44,420 nucleotides of DNA from Macrostomum lignano. Its lineage: Eukaryota. A model generated the notes under the pieces. It worked only from the letters and a program-made list of their open reading frames with translations. It had not been told where the DNA came from and made no database searches. A program made the translations under genes and the position numbers. Positions 13,101 to 19,100 of this stretch are shown here, piece by piece (positions within the stretch are counted from its first letter, which is position 1; each line of letters begins with the position of its first letter). The stretch spans positions 1-44,420 of the forward strand of contig NIVC01004487.1 of assembly GCA_002269645.1 (NCBI GenBank). Reading direction: 5' to 3'.

Positions 13101-16100
13101 TCTGGTCTGGTCTGGTCTGGTCTGGTCTGGTCTGGTGTTGGTGTGATCTGGTCTGGTGGGTTTTCATGTGGTTCGATGTGTTTGGTGTGATCTGGTCTGG
13201 TGGGTTTTCATGTGGTTCGATGTGTTTGGTGTGATCTGGTCTGGTGGGTTTTCATGTGGTTCGATGTGTTTGGTGTGATCTGGTCTGGTGGGTTTTCATG
13301 TGGTTCGATGTGTTTGGTGTGATCTGGTCTGGTGGGTTTTCATGTGGTTCGATGTGTTTGGTGTGATCTGGTCTGGCGGGTTTTCATGTGGTTCGATGTG
13401 TTTGGTGTGATCTGGTCTGGTGGGTTTTCATGTGGTTCGATGTGTTTGGTGTGATCTGGTCTGGCGGGTTTTCATGTGGTTCGATGTGTTTGGTGTGATC
13501 TGGTCTGGTGGGTTTTCATGTGGTTCGATGTGTTTGGTGTGATCTGGTCTGGCGGGTTTTCATGTGGTTCGATGTGTTTGGTGTGATCTTGTCTAGTCTC
13601 TACAAAGGTGGCTAGGATAGGGATAGAGCTTCACCTGTCAAGAAGCATTACCTGTAATCCCGACACCAGTACATCTGTGATGCTGCCAATGACTGTGATA
13701 AAGTCGAATATGTTCCATCTGTCCCGGAAGTAGTTCTAAAATTTGGTGAAGCAACGTGACGTTTGGAAATCTTTAGAAGATACATTCGGACATGCGCAGA
13801 AATTTCTGCAACTTGAATTTTTCATAAAAGTGCAGCGAATGCCGATTGGCTGTTAAAAGTTATTGAGCAACATATTATGCCGGATAAAATAGGTATTTAT
13901 GCTATAAAAAGACTTACGTGTCTGACAGCCTGAAAACTTTAGTAATGTATGTAAGACATCAGAATATGACGCATATCTCGCTTGTTTAACACTAGATAGA
14001 TGTTCCCTATCAAGTCACTATTCACCTACATATGATATTGGTAACAAAGAAAAAATCCGTAAAAAGTGCTGCATCTAGAGCTGGATGCTGGATCAGATAG
14101 GGCCCAGCATAACTGTTAATCCGCATACACTTTATCGCGACAACAGCGACAACAACTAGCACGCATTGCCGACGTCAAGACTGCAGGGTTCAGACAACGT
14201 GAACTTTGAGGGCCCTGGGGTCGCTCAATCATTCACATACGAGTGTGAAAGCATGCGCTTAAACAGCCAATGTGCAGGATATTTTATGGACAGGCTGTCT
14301 GTCAAGTGCAAATTTAATGAATGCTCAGGGCGATGGTGAGCCACTGGGTATAATTCCCTTTGCTACCCTATTTGTGTCAAAATCTACGCATTTGAATAAT
14401 TGCAATTAGTAATGTCATTATGTTGAACTCCCCACAAATGTGCGAAAAACAGGAGTACAGTGAGTGATGTCGGGTACACTGGGATAGTCGATCACATGTA
14501 AATACTGTGTATAAAACGGTTCAATTTCGAGTGTTAACTAGAATAACCGTAACCGAATGTACAGAATAGTAAATTATTCACCAGCAGTTTTGCATGCTTA
14601 GAAATGAATAACACAATCCCAAACAGGTGTAGACAATTAGAGGCTGGAGACTGCGGGGGACAAGGCGTCAGACTCAGCGCAACTATGATTAAAAAATGAC
14701 ACCACAAAAAATTAGCACGGCTCCGGTTGCAGCAAGTTAGGAGCAACTCGATGTACCTTGGGTCCAAATGCCAGGATTTTGAGTATGCACTCAACAGAGA
14801 ACATGACAGTGAAGGCTGAGTTGAGGTACACCAGGGTACTGCAATAGTGCTTGTACGCCTGGTGCTCGGGATCTTCCAGCCCGTCCAATGTTTGAGTCTC
14901 GCGCCTGTAGTACTGGGCACAGGCAACCGCGGGGGCAGAGAGGGAGGAGGAGCGCAGAAACGGTAAACAATTGTACGGCGGGTACGCCAGTTACAGTAAA
15001 GTACGTCAAAGGCAGTAGTATAATCAGTATCAGTAGTATAAGTAGTATACATGCTTTGAAATCTAGCGGGGCAAAAAATTGAAGGCCATCACGGCTGCGG
15101 CATGGGCCGGTGCTCCAGATGGCAGTTAGGATTACTTTGAGCACAATCTAGCTCAGACTGAGCAGCTGGCACAATAAAAATATTTAATAGCCAAGAGGTA
15201 AAAAAGTTAATAAATGCACAGAAAGAGTTTACAAGTCTTCTCTCGCTCAGCTTCAATGAATAATGTTAAGCAAAGTAATTTCGGATAGGTGGGAGGGGCA
15301 GCCTACAACTTAGCTGAACACTCCGCTGCTTGCATCCGGCAATCTTTGCTGCTTTTTAATTATAAAACTCAAAGAAAAAAACGGTCTATGAAAGAATAAA
15401 TGAGCAAAACTACTGAGAAAGTTGGTCTCTGCCATGCTTTGCAGATCTGGTGCAAAATCTCTTCAGTTCAGAAAACGAAGTTTAGAAATGAAACAAGCGT
15501 GACAAAGGACTAATTCCTTTTCTCGAAAGCACTCTTCCCTGTCCTGCCTTGAAGCAGAAAAGTTAAGCTGGGTTAACCAGAGCTGAGGCTAGCAGGCAAA
15601 ACAATGGCTGTCAGCAGCGGGCCTCAAATTTTCTAGCTTTCTTACCTCAGGGGCCTGACAAAGAGCTGGGTAGAGATAGAGAGATAGGAGAAAGGGGAGA
15701 GGCGAGGGAATAAAGGAGAAGAGAGTAGAGATGAAGTAGGAGAGGAGAGAGAGATTAGAGAGAAGAGCGCTGAGAATAGATATAGACGTTGAGCGGGCCG
15801 GATTGCTATTGTGAAGTTTCAAAGGTCCCGAGCATCGGATAGAAGGGCTTTGCAGACAACATGGGCCCCATGGGCCTCTTATCCGCTCTAAATCAAACCT
15901 AACGCCTGAAGGACCACCTTTCCAAACGAAATCAAATTCGCGAAGCGAAGTTGGCGGCTCAAGCAGCTCTACTAAAAGTTAAATGCCATTTTTTAGAAAA
16001 GGCTGCAGAGCAGATGAAAAGATTGGCTAATTCTGCTTTAAGATTGTTCAAGAAAATATATAAAACAGAAAAGAAATCGAATAAAAACTGAACAGAAATA

Positions 16101-19100
16101 GCCGAAGGAAGCGGCATATATGGTTGAAGGCTCAAGGACCGGCAGGTGTTCTGGGCTGCTCAGGCTTACCCTAATATCTAAGCCCAGCATTTTCAGCAGG
16201 CACTCAATGCTAAACACCACGGTGAATGCGATATTCAGATTTCTCATTATATCGCTGTAGAATTGACTGGCACCGTGGAACTGAAAATTATTTTCATATT
16301 TAATCAATTTCAAAGCTGCTCGGGGACTTGACTGTTTGACTTGTTTATCTTGGTACTCTTGGTAAATATATTATTTTTATGTAAGCAGGTGGTGAAACCT
16401 TTATAAAGTAATAATGAGATCACATCTTTAATTGCTTAATACGAGCGTAACGGCATATAGAGCAATGAGCTGCTAAAATTGTTTGCAAGCATGTGGCATT
16501 TTTTGCAATAGACACTTTAATAGTGGCATATTAAGCAAATACAAGCAATATATACTTTATCTATAATGCCTGATAGATGCCATCATTTACTCGTAAAAAA
16601 TCTAATTGAGAGGCTGGTGGGTACGGAGTCAGGGGTGGAGAAAGTACGGGTGAATCAAAAGAAGGTGAGGTGGATGGAATAATCAATAGCGTAGGAGACG
16701 GGAGTGAGGTGGGTGTAGACGTCAAGGGTCGTGGGGGACGGGAGTGAGGTGGGTGTAGAAATCAAGTGTCGTGGGGACGGGAGTGAGGTGGGTGTAGACA
16801 TCAAGGGTCGTGGGGGACGGGAGTGAGGTGGGTGTAGAAATCAAGGGTCGTGGGGACGGGAGTGAGGTGGGTGTAGAAATCAAGGGTCGTGGGGACGGGA
16901 GTGAAGTGGGTGTAGACATCAAGGGTCGTGGGGGACGGGAGTGAGGTGGGTGGAGAAATCAAAGATCGTGGGAACGGGAGTGAGGTGGGTGGAGAAAAGA
17001 TTCAAATTCCAATTAAAGTAAAATTCAAGAAAGGCATTCTGGCTTTATACAATTTCACTTTCATGAAATAAAAATTGTGATTTTGCTTTAAGCAATAGTC
17101 AAGCCCTTACCTTCATCATCAGAATTAGAGTATTCAGCGCAATCATCACCATGATGAAGTATTCGAACGGTGTCGACACCACCAATCGCCAAATTCGATA
17201 CTTGATGGAGTTCTTGTTCTTGGGCATGTAGCGGCACAGCGGCCTCGCGTTGATGGCGAAGTCAATGCACTGGCGCTGTGTTGTGGAGTGCGAATTAATG
17301 GGACGTCAAATTGCTTCTGTGCGAGTCCAATGTGTACTTTTTCCGTATCACAGACCAATACTGCATATCTAGGCTTCCAATTAAAATATTCTTGGAATTT
17401 CTTCAATTTTGACTGGGTTTTCATAAGTCACACTGTTGAAAATTGCCATTTGGCTACTGGATTTCTGGCATCAGGGGCCAAATCGAGCACGTTGTCAATC
17501 ATTTCATGTTTTTTTTTGCTTTTTTCATGCTATTGAGATTAATGACTGACAAACTACGGGATACGGTAACTAGGGAATTTTGGCCCCTTGTCTTAACTCA
17601 AGCCTGGATCTCCGACAGAAATAATCCAGACTGTAAAAAAAAAACAGATCCCTGTTGAACGGCACTATCACGCTAGCTTCGACTGTCGAGCGGCACTCAC
17701 CTGGTTCTTGTCGATCTCCTGGTCCACCAGATCATTCTCGCCCTGCTCCTGGAACGTGATGATGATCAAGGCGACGAAGATGTTCACAAAGAAGAAGGGA
17801 AACACGATGAAAAAGATGACGTAGAAGATGGCCATCTCCTTGCGGTAGTCGGGCACCGGCCCCGTGTCAACGTGCGTGGCGGCCATGGAGTTCATCAGCA
17901 CACTGCAATCGCCAAGTTTTGTTAGGTTGCCCTGCTTTGTTGCGATTCCATGAAACAGAGTTGAGTTTACTGCGTAATAAGTTGCATAATATCAAGCGCA
18001 AAGCATAGGAACTTTAGGGCGATAGAAAAGCTGGTAAAAAAATTAATCAAAGAAATTATTCAAAAAATAAAAAAGTTATTCATACATACTTCAAACAGAG
18101 AGAGTGTGAGTGGGCAGGGAGTGAGGTTGGTGTTACACAAGAGAGTGTGAGTGGGCAGGGAGTGAGGTTGGTGTTACACAAGAGAGTGTGAGTGGGCAGG
18201 GAGTGAGGTTGGTGTTACACAAGAGAGTGTGAGTGGGCAGGAAAATAGTGGAAGTGAGCCTGTCGCTCTACTTGCGACTGAGGAATCTGAGATGCAATAC
18301 TGTCTGCAAGACGGCTATCAATATGAAGAACAGAAAATACACAACAGATCGTGCAAGACAACACTGGCCAAAGTACAAGCCTAGGGACTTTGCAGAAACT
18401 GGGTTGGACATTACGTTGGCCAGCCTTCGCCAGTGGACACGGTGAACAAGGTGAGCATGGAGTTGTAGATGTTGTCGTAGTGGAAGCTCTGGTTGCTCCA
18501 CTGCCGCTCGCGCATCTCGGGCTTTTCGGCGTCGCCGTCGTAGTGAAAATAAAATCCCCTTTGTTGTTCGAGGATTAGATAAATAAAAAACGTGTTAAAG
18601 CTGCGTTGAAGCTATGAGACAGCAAATTTAGAGTAAAAAATGTCCTTGACCAAAACTCTACCACCATTCACCGGATGCTAGGTTTAGCATGACTACACTT
18701 GTGCGTCCCAACAATGCGCTTCCCAATGAACCGGATTGAATGAGGAATGCAGCCACCAAGGGTTTCGGGGTAAAGGAAGGGAAGCTGGGCTGATCAACCT
18801 ACAAGTTCCAGCCCTCTCCCGTGGTGACAGTGAACAGCGTTATCAACGATATGAAAACGTCGTCATAGCGGAAGCACTGTGCCCGCCAGCTGCGCGCGTC
18901 GACGGAAACTGAAGTCTCGCCGTTTGGCGCCGTTTCATAATTGAAGAAGTAACCCCTGCATTTGTTGGGTCGGCGGCTCGGTTGGACGCGTGGACAGGAA
19001 TGCTCCCGGAACGGCTAATACTACTAATACTAGCAACTTCAGGAGGGCCGCGGGCACCCTGGCGCATCGGCTTCGGCGACATCATCGCGCAGCCAGCGCT

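Follow-up and report, generated by a model that had tools for sequence, protein, structure and literature searches.

The closest described counterpart of the exon pair reported here is found in the CaV2 gene of the mollusc Aplysia, in which exons 33a and 33b form an alternative pair at the S2 segment of repeat IV (IVS2) and are used in a cell-specific manner (PMC10657410). The preferred exon 33 variant differs between the sensory neurons and the whole nervous system, and swapping 33a and 33b left synaptic depression unchanged (PMC10657410). A matching alternative pair at IVS2 is present in Crassostrea and Octopus (PMC5818475, Table 1), and the authors of the Aplysia work regarded their splice site as mollusc-restricted (PMC10657410). 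The Drosophila Cav2 gene cacophony is reported to possess mutually exclusive pairs only at IS4 (IS4A/IS4B) and I-II (I-IIA/I-IIB), with none located at IVS2, and its IS4 choice alters the activation voltage and synaptic targeting (PMC11828482). In rat Cav1.2, transcripts containing exons 21 and 22 together exist at a level of 5-14%, and their products are non-conducting and bind beta subunits more strongly (PMC5748662). The choice between exons 8 and 8a of Cav1.2 is set by the repressor PTB acting on intronic elements (PMC3060452).

Here, a 44,420-nucleotide (nt) stretch of the genome of Macrostomum lignano (contig NIVC01004487.1, referred to as the window over its whole length) was analysed. 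M. lignano is a free-living flatworm of the early-branching Macrostomorpha. Its Cav2-type gene in the window carries two tandem exons, A and B, each encoding a version of IVS2 with the loop that precedes it. Inspection of the letters alone had suggested that the two are alternatives differing by 15 amino acids (aa) in loop length (the original prediction). Based on the sequence comparisons presented below, exons A and B are estimated, with a probability of about 70%, to form a mutually exclusive pair in which exon A is a functional alternative exon.

Results

A Tandem Pair of IVS2 Exons in a Cav2-Type Channel Gene

The window comprises most of an M. lignano gene for the alpha-1 subunit of a voltage-gated calcium channel of the Cav2 type (N/P/Q/R-like). 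Exons of repeats I-IV, of the EF-hand region and of the IQ region follow one another in order on the minus strand from 42387 to 6358. The best matches of either spliced isoform in PDB were repeat IV S1-S3 of human Cav2.2, Cav2.1 and Cav2.3, with phmmer scores of 237-247 bits, compared with 162-180 for Cav1.x, at most 128 for Nav and at most 96 for Cav3. The named relatives were the "calcium channel type A subunit alpha-1" proteins of Schistosoma, Paragonimus and Fasciola, and Pfam domains GPHH and Ca_chan_IQ were recorded for homologous open reading frames (ORFs) of contig L003, the closest relative. Between 42387 and 6358 on its minus strand, the window matched the UniProt protein A0A1I8J3F4 of M. 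lignano (1889 aa) at about 100%, and it therefore contains the gene of this protein or a near-identical copy of that gene.

The position of the pair in the channel was set by alignment to residues 1435-1553 of human Cav2.2. The constitutive upstream exon (17275-17111, minus strand, as are all channel exons given below; 165 nt) encodes the end of the III-IV linker and IVS1 and terminates with the donor AAG/gtaagg. Exon A (16280-16170, 111 nt, 37 aa, phase 0/0) encodes a short canonical IVS1-S2 loop, IVS2 and the S2-S3 linker and is flanked by the acceptor ...aattttcag/ and the donor /gtaagc. Exon B (14912-14757, 156 nt, 52 aa, phase 0/0) encodes a long acidic IVS1-S2 loop followed by IVS2 and the S2-S3 linker and lies between the acceptor ...gtgcccag/ and the donor /gtacat. 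The constitutive downstream exon (13735-13652, 84 nt) encodes IVS3. When the window was re-read, the coordinates, translations, phases and splice sites given for exons A and B in the original prediction proved exact to the base, and so did the loop difference of 15 aa with phase 0/0 for each exon, the LNxAFTVxFSxECxLK sequence common to both and the extra Cys of exon B.

The two exons matched one another in a tblastn search within the window (E = 2e-7), and each of them matched the equivalent exon of other animals. Such pairing is above chance and indicates, at the sequence level, that exons A and B are homologous. The exons around them are well conserved, the upstream one being 80-89% identical to its counterpart in trematodes and other animals and the IVS3 exon being 86-96% identical in other animals. 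The locus displays the arrangement of a mutually exclusive pair, with two adjacent homologous exons placed between the same constitutive neighbours and having the same phases and usable AG/GT sites. The alternative exons cover the IVS1-S2 loop and IVS2 of a Cav2 channel, as in the mollusc pair. The isoform spliced through exon A aligned with repeat IV of human Cav2 over 119 residues with no gap, and the isoform spliced through exon B showed one 15-residue insertion located just after S1. The exon B loop contains the motif Y..YC. The S2-S3 linker encoded by exon A is unusual (MLGLDIR), and that of exon B is canonical (AFGPK).

Exon A Has the Ancestral Length and Loop Motif and Exon B a Flatworm-Specific Form

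The segment between "...LMMK" and "NYFxD" was surveyed in about 80 Cav2 and Cav1 proteins from many phyla. Its length was almost always 37 aa, which is the length of exon A. In the lophotrochozoan contig L005, the segment is encoded by a single 111-nt exon with the same boundaries as exon A, and a single canonical exon was also detected in contig L031. Compared with the FHGNSEFYEKILR-type loops from other phyla, the 13-residue loop of exon A was identical at up to 8 of its positions, and the loop motif FHG[AN]S.FY was common to exon A and other animal phyla.

The class represented by exon B is 52-55 aa long and was found only in flatworms, namely in both trematode Cav2 paralogues, a cestode, two monogeneans and contig L003. 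In the sampled trematode, cestode and monogenean proteins, it was the only form present. Exon B was 58-63% identical to the 53-54-aa exon of trematodes, the cestode and contig L003. The alignment of eight B-type exons (from M. lignano, L003, trematodes and one cestode, with no monogenean included) revealed 20 invariant columns, among them Y20, Y23 and C24 of the loop. Exon B resembles an exon of the A type extended by 15-16 residues on the 5' side. The scan of JGI metagenomes returned no B-type loci, all 23 loci obtained being canonical-type animal exons.

As regards signs of purifying selection, exon B was conserved across Neodermata and L003, and exon A kept the ancestral length, the loop motif and the S2 core. 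Exons A and B shared 16 of 37 residues, whereas exon B and its neodermatan orthologues shared 23-29 of 37. Because of this difference, the sequences indicate that the A-B duplication predates the split between Macrostomum and the parasitic flatworms.

No A-like exon was found in the trematode introns between the S1 exon and exon B (350, 246 and 1101 nt; P. kellicotti L001, P. skrjabini L007 and S. mattheei L006 were examined). Contigs L002 and L004 end too early for a comparison of exon A, and the sequence available for L003 extends only about 930 nt beyond its exon B on the upstream side. A weak A-like match in L003 (320-412) was rejected, as it contained a stop codon and had no similarity to S2. 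The comparison of orthologues suggested as a check of the original prediction upheld exon B, which is conserved in flatworms, and left exon A with no orthologue in the other flatworms sampled. The simplest history of the pair would involve the duplication of the exon in an early flatworm, followed by the loss of A and the retention of B in Neodermata.

Evidence for and against the Use of Exon A

Exon A retains an open frame, consensus splice sites, the ancestral length and phase and the ancestral loop motif. All five near-invariant S2 residues (N, F, F, E and K) are kept, including the aromatic and acidic residues of the charge-transfer centre. As these features persist despite a split from exon B that appears older than the divergence of Macrostomum and Neodermata, their retention was counted in favour of exon A being used. 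Exon A would then be expressed, most likely in mutual exclusion with exon B.

Several observations weigh against the use of exon A. It is more divergent in S2, with a mean of 13.4 identities to canonical exons over 37 residues, compared with means of 16.3 for exon B and 17.2 among the canonical exons, and it has GLD where nearly all channels have the AFG linker motif. Such divergence fits either a specialised minor isoform or early decay. The open 37-codon frame is weak evidence in itself, since about 17% of random frames are open that long. Furthermore, both public gene models join A to B, no mechanism enforcing the exon choice was found, and exon A had no orthologue in any other flatworm sampled, including the truncated L003.

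A part of these data could be explained if exon A were an unused relic (a pseudo-exon) of the old duplication and exon B were constitutive, as in the parasitic flatworms, in which case no switch would exist. The presence of only the B type in all other flatworm Cav2 proteins sampled, the three trematode loci without exon A, the missing flatworm orthologue, the divergence of S2 with the loss of the AFG linker motif and the poor pyrimidine tract at the exon A acceptor are all consistent with a relic. However, the A-B split (16/37) is older than the divergence of exon B from its neodermatan orthologues (23-29/37), and a neutral relic of such an age should have lost the frame, the splice sites, the exact length and phase, the loop motif and the five S2 residues. 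Several constitutive acceptors of the same gene are equally AT-rich, and pairs at the same position are used alternatively in molluscs. A relic was considered unlikely for these reasons, and exon A was regarded as more probably a functional alternative exon.

Joint Inclusion of Both Exons in Public Gene Models

The inclusion of exons A and B together adds up to 267 nt and keeps the frame. It would add a helix and invert the topology, as originally predicted, and two S2 segments cannot both sit in a working voltage sensor. The further claim that active exclusion is needed was too strong in view of the in-frame double-inclusion transcripts of Cav1.2 exons 21 and 22, which are present at 5-14% (PMC5748662).

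An exhaustive HMMER search with a tandem A+B query returned a 735-aa protein spanning both exons in one stretch, together with its 1889-aa cluster mate. These proteins are UniProt A0A1I8G0I3 and A0A1I8J3F4 (P0080 and P0212). Protein searches with the separately spliced isoforms A and B returned no M. lignano product. Both A0A1I8G0I3 and A0A1I8J3F4 splice 16170 to 14912, which places 89 residues with two S2 helices between IVS1 and IVS3. One public M. lignano model runs through the exon B donor into the intron.

Taken at face value, the 16170-14912 junction of the two models would mean that A and B are normally spliced in tandem, whether as the main product or as a non-conducting variant with a regulated, dominant-negative role. 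Being in frame, the junction would yield a product that escapes nonsense-mediated decay (NMD), and the non-conducting rat Cav1.2 products with exons 21 and 22 provide a precedent. On the other hand, with two consecutive S2 helices, S3-S4 and the remainder of repeat IV would take the opposite orientation in the membrane. Outside the two M. lignano models, one further surveyed protein had the tandem form, and it was also an unreviewed automatic prediction. A0A1I8J3F4 strings together other exon pairs too, a hallmark of ab initio prediction in which every exon that looks coding is accepted. Regular tandem splicing was therefore judged highly improbable; it is plausible as a minor by-product, not as the main product. 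The pairs joined in A0A1I8J3F4 include two exons of IIS3-S4 and, in part, two pore exons of repeat III, and the tandem A+B splicing in both UniProt models was read as an artefact of gene prediction, that is, an annotation error and not evidence of tandem use.

Other tandem pairs were noticed in the course of the analysis. The second pair of the gene is located at IIS3-S4 and consists of two exons of 113 nt each (37054-36942 and 36312-36200). The inclusion of both would shift the frame, and the first exon has a GC donor (ACTAG/gcaagt). A0A1I8J3F4 joins the two IIS3-S4 exons in series. The third pair is located in the pore-loop/selectivity-filter region of repeat III (18955-18803, 153 nt, and 18558-18415, 144 nt), with the canonical GEGWP present in the second exon. 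In two Cav1-type models of invertebrate L-type channels (P0127 and P0135), two IVS3 segments were observed in tandem, e.g., AYFNDKWNVFDF... followed by NYFGDPWNVFD. This arrangement resembles the exon 31/32 pair of Cav1.2, apparently merged by gene predictors.

How the Choice between the Exons Could Be Made

The exon/intron anatomy ruled out three mechanisms of mutual exclusion. Steric hindrance was excluded as the A-B intron is 1257 nt long. Mixed U2/U12 sites were not seen, the four sites examined being GT-AG with donors of the U2 type (gtaagg, gtaagc, gtacat and gtaatg). Policing by NMD was excluded because 111 and 156 nt are both multiples of three, and double inclusion or skipping stays in frame.

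The splice sites of the two exons are of complementary strength. Exon A has a weak acceptor with a poor pyrimidine tract (aaaataattttcag) and a strong donor (AGG/gtaagc). Exon B has a strong pyrimidine-rich acceptor, and its donor (AAG/gtacat) is the weakest one of the gene. The A-B intron harbours a CU-rich tract (15780-15660, minus strand) of 121 nt, with 87% pyrimidine on the sense strand, five CUCUCU and three UCUU elements. It is separated from exon A, on its upstream side, by about 390 nt and from exon B, on its downstream side, by about 750 nt. No other tract of this kind occurred anywhere on the sense strand of the window under three thresholds, and the A-B intron makes up 2.8% of the window. 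The tract is a candidate platform for a PTB-like splicing repressor and is offered as a lead, not as a result. The best lead for the exon choice would be trans-acting control through this tract, acting together with the complementary strengths of the A and B splice sites.

Competing RNA base-pairing of the Dscam1 or 14-3-3zeta kind, in which selector sequences pair with a docking site, could also bring about mutual exclusion. The intronic 13-mer at 15834-15822 (UGCUCGGGACCUU) is complementary at 12 of 13 positions to 14875-14863 inside exon B and at 11 of 13 positions to 16329-16317, located 37-49 nt upstream of exon A, and the geometry would be right for a two-way switch. Nevertheless, complementary 13-mers were not above chance (4 observed versus 2.9 +/- 1.5 in 100 dinucleotide shuffles), and the arms are short, with a perfect core of 8 bp. 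The global intron-intron duplexfold energies were weaker than those of the shuffles, a test poorly suited to the question and uninformative. The inverted repeats detected in the 13600-17300 region were short (12-19 nt). A base-pairing switch hence appears very doubtful, and trans-acting control through the CU-rich tract is the preferred direction.

Control of the Rbfox type was considered and rejected, as the 3.7-kb region contained five GCAUG elements versus about 4.7 expected and no UGCAUG. The Rfam scan of the window gave no matches.

What the Switch Would Change

If the exons are used as proposed, each mature mRNA would carry one of them, and the gene would give rise to two channels, one with the ancestral short-loop sensor (A) and the other with the flatworm-specific sensor (B). 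The loop has 13 residues in exon A versus 28 in exon B, and the latter is acidic and contains the conserved Cys. Apart from the loop, exons A and B differ at 11 of the 24 positions that cover S2 and the S2-S3 linker on the intracellular side. The pair had been proposed to be a switchable extracellular surface. The largest difference does lie in the 15-aa acidic, Cys-bearing extension of the loop; the differences at 11 of 24 positions in S2 and the linker mean that the switch would not be a purely extracellular one. For the suggested contact with an auxiliary subunit or a synaptic partner, no support was obtained. In Cav2.3, the association of alpha2delta is assigned to the pore loops ECL-I and ECL-II (PMC9889812).

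Both exons keep the residues of the gating-charge transfer centre in S2 (N...F..F..E...K), for which reason both should yield working sensors. The two sensors would differ in the gating set-point or kinetics and in the contacts of the hairpin tip, whose partner, judging from the domain-swapped layout of the channel, is probably the neighbouring pore loop of repeat I. The AlphaFold model of the isoform B sensor was of moderate confidence, with a mean predicted local distance difference test (pLDDT) score of 69.6 and about 53 in the insert, and was used only qualitatively. In this model, the insert is predicted to form a short extension of S1 and a low-confidence acidic tip, with a 10-residue segment extending the S2 helix outward.

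In human Cav2.3, the neutralisation of the repeat-IV gating charges abolished the current, and contacts between the tip of an S1-S2 hairpin and the adjacent pore loop shift the activation by about 5 mV (PMC9889812). In the light of these data and of the alpha2delta assignment in the same work, an effect of the switch on gating or on sensor-to-pore coupling is the most grounded guess as to how channels with sensors A and B would differ in function.

Other Features of the Window

Two minisatellites flank the region of the pair. One is located in the intron upstream of exon A (16697-16997) and consists of a 39-nt unit repeated 7.6 times. The other is located in the intron after the IVS3 exon (13138-13594), with a 44-nt unit repeated 10.4 times and 98% matches. 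Further downstream in the gene, one unbroken exon of about 900 nt (13012-12119, minus strand) encodes IVS4 through the pore, IVS6, the EF-hand and the pre-IQ region. The same region is split into many exons in other animals, which looks like extensive intron loss.

A reverse-transcriptase-like frame was detected on the plus strand at 27790-28281 and matched an RVT_1 ORF of contig L005 over 176 aa (31% identity). It lies antisense to the channel gene in an intron of 6.2 kb, flanked by an exon that ends at 30387 and one that starts at 24129. The stretch between 24 and 30 kb is GC-rich (55-60% GC versus about 46% elsewhere).

Discussion

The interest of the pair is mainly evolutionary, as both the ancestral and the derived exon persist in a free-living flatworm, and in the parasites the derived exon alone is left. 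The Cav2 of all parasitic flatworms carries the long Cys-bearing IVS1-S2 loop, whose origin is dated by this locus; the locus also suggests that the loop arose as an alternative exon. Macrostomum may represent a living intermediate of exon replacement, in which the ancestor ran both exons exclusively and Neodermata fixed B. Together with the mollusc and arthropod pairs, the module could then be either an ancient protostome switch or a hot spot of duplication. This scenario is put forward tentatively, its odds being judged slightly less than even.

The two public M. lignano models, in which one S2 helix follows another, describe a voltage sensor that cannot exist and should be split into isoforms. 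A0A1I8J3F4 also mishandles two further exon pairs. The exon pair overturns no current understanding and is of modest interest in this respect. The same module recurs as a splice switch, being spliced alternatively in molluscs and apparently duplicated in arthropods, and no function of the switch was found. M. lignano is genetically tractable and is a possible system for probing the role of the repeat-IV S1-S2 hairpin.

The search of the literature found nothing on Cav2 splicing in Macrostomum or on mutually exclusive Cav2 exons in flatworms. The Aplysia 33a/33b pair is similar to the flatworm one in belonging to the same gene family, the single Cav2 of invertebrates, and in lying in tandem between the IVS1 and IVS3 exons. 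An oyster isoform (Crassostrea XP_078326088.1, P0087) has a 55-aa long-loop version of the segment. In contrast to this likeness in position, the flatworm loop and linker do not recognisably resemble either mollusc variant, and the flatworm pair, which is known from genome sequence, may be an independent duplication.

Pairs of IVS2 exons were also observed in arthropod-like Cav2 loci from JGI metagenomes, where two tandem 111-nt exons with AG/GT sites lie between the IVS1 and IVS3 exons. They were located at 2760-2870 and 4128-4238 in L025, at 3236-3346 and 6553-6663 in L009 and at 9998-10108 and 17800-17910 in L010, and further arthropod-like loci with the pair were L011, L014, L017, L018 and L022. 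A protein of the ostracod Cyprideis torosa (CAD7224407.1, P0093) contains both IVS2 exons in tandem; a look-up of its genomic locus gave no record. The arthropod "a" and "b" types are each conserved across taxa, with 19-25 and 15-23 identities of 37, respectively, within the type and at most 17 of 37 between the types. No description of an arthropod IVS2 pair was found in the literature examined. Unlike the flatworm pair, the arthropod pairs consist of exons that are both 111 nt long, so there is no change in loop length, and neither type groups with flatworm A or B. The flatworm exons shared 8-21 of 37 residues with mollusc and arthropod exons, no more than with single-copy exons, and 37 residues are too few to resolve descent. 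Neither of the flatworm exons grouped with any one type of the molluscs or arthropods, and the sequence identities would fit both a common origin of the flatworm, mollusc and arthropod pairs and recurrent duplication.

Exons 21 and 22 of mammalian Cav1.2 (CACNA1C) resemble the flatworm exons in covering S2 and part of the S1-S2 linker and in that their joint inclusion is in frame and escapes NMD. They differ in being located in repeat III of an L-type channel and in having an equal length of 60 nt, with no change in loop length, and they stem from an unrelated duplication. Cacophony is likewise an invertebrate Cav2 gene diversified by tandem exon pairs within the voltage sensor, but its pairs are located at positions other than the flatworm IVS2 pair. 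As for the possible control, exons 8 and 8a of Cav1.2 are an exclusive pair regulated by PTB, and the only long CU tract of the flatworm window lies between A and B. The PTB elements of Cav1.2 are located just upstream of exon 8a, whereas the flatworm candidate tract is 390 and 750 nt away from the exons. Compared with these systems, the flatworm pair would represent a known type of splice switch in a phylum where it was previously undescribed, and the public gene models of this locus are wrong.

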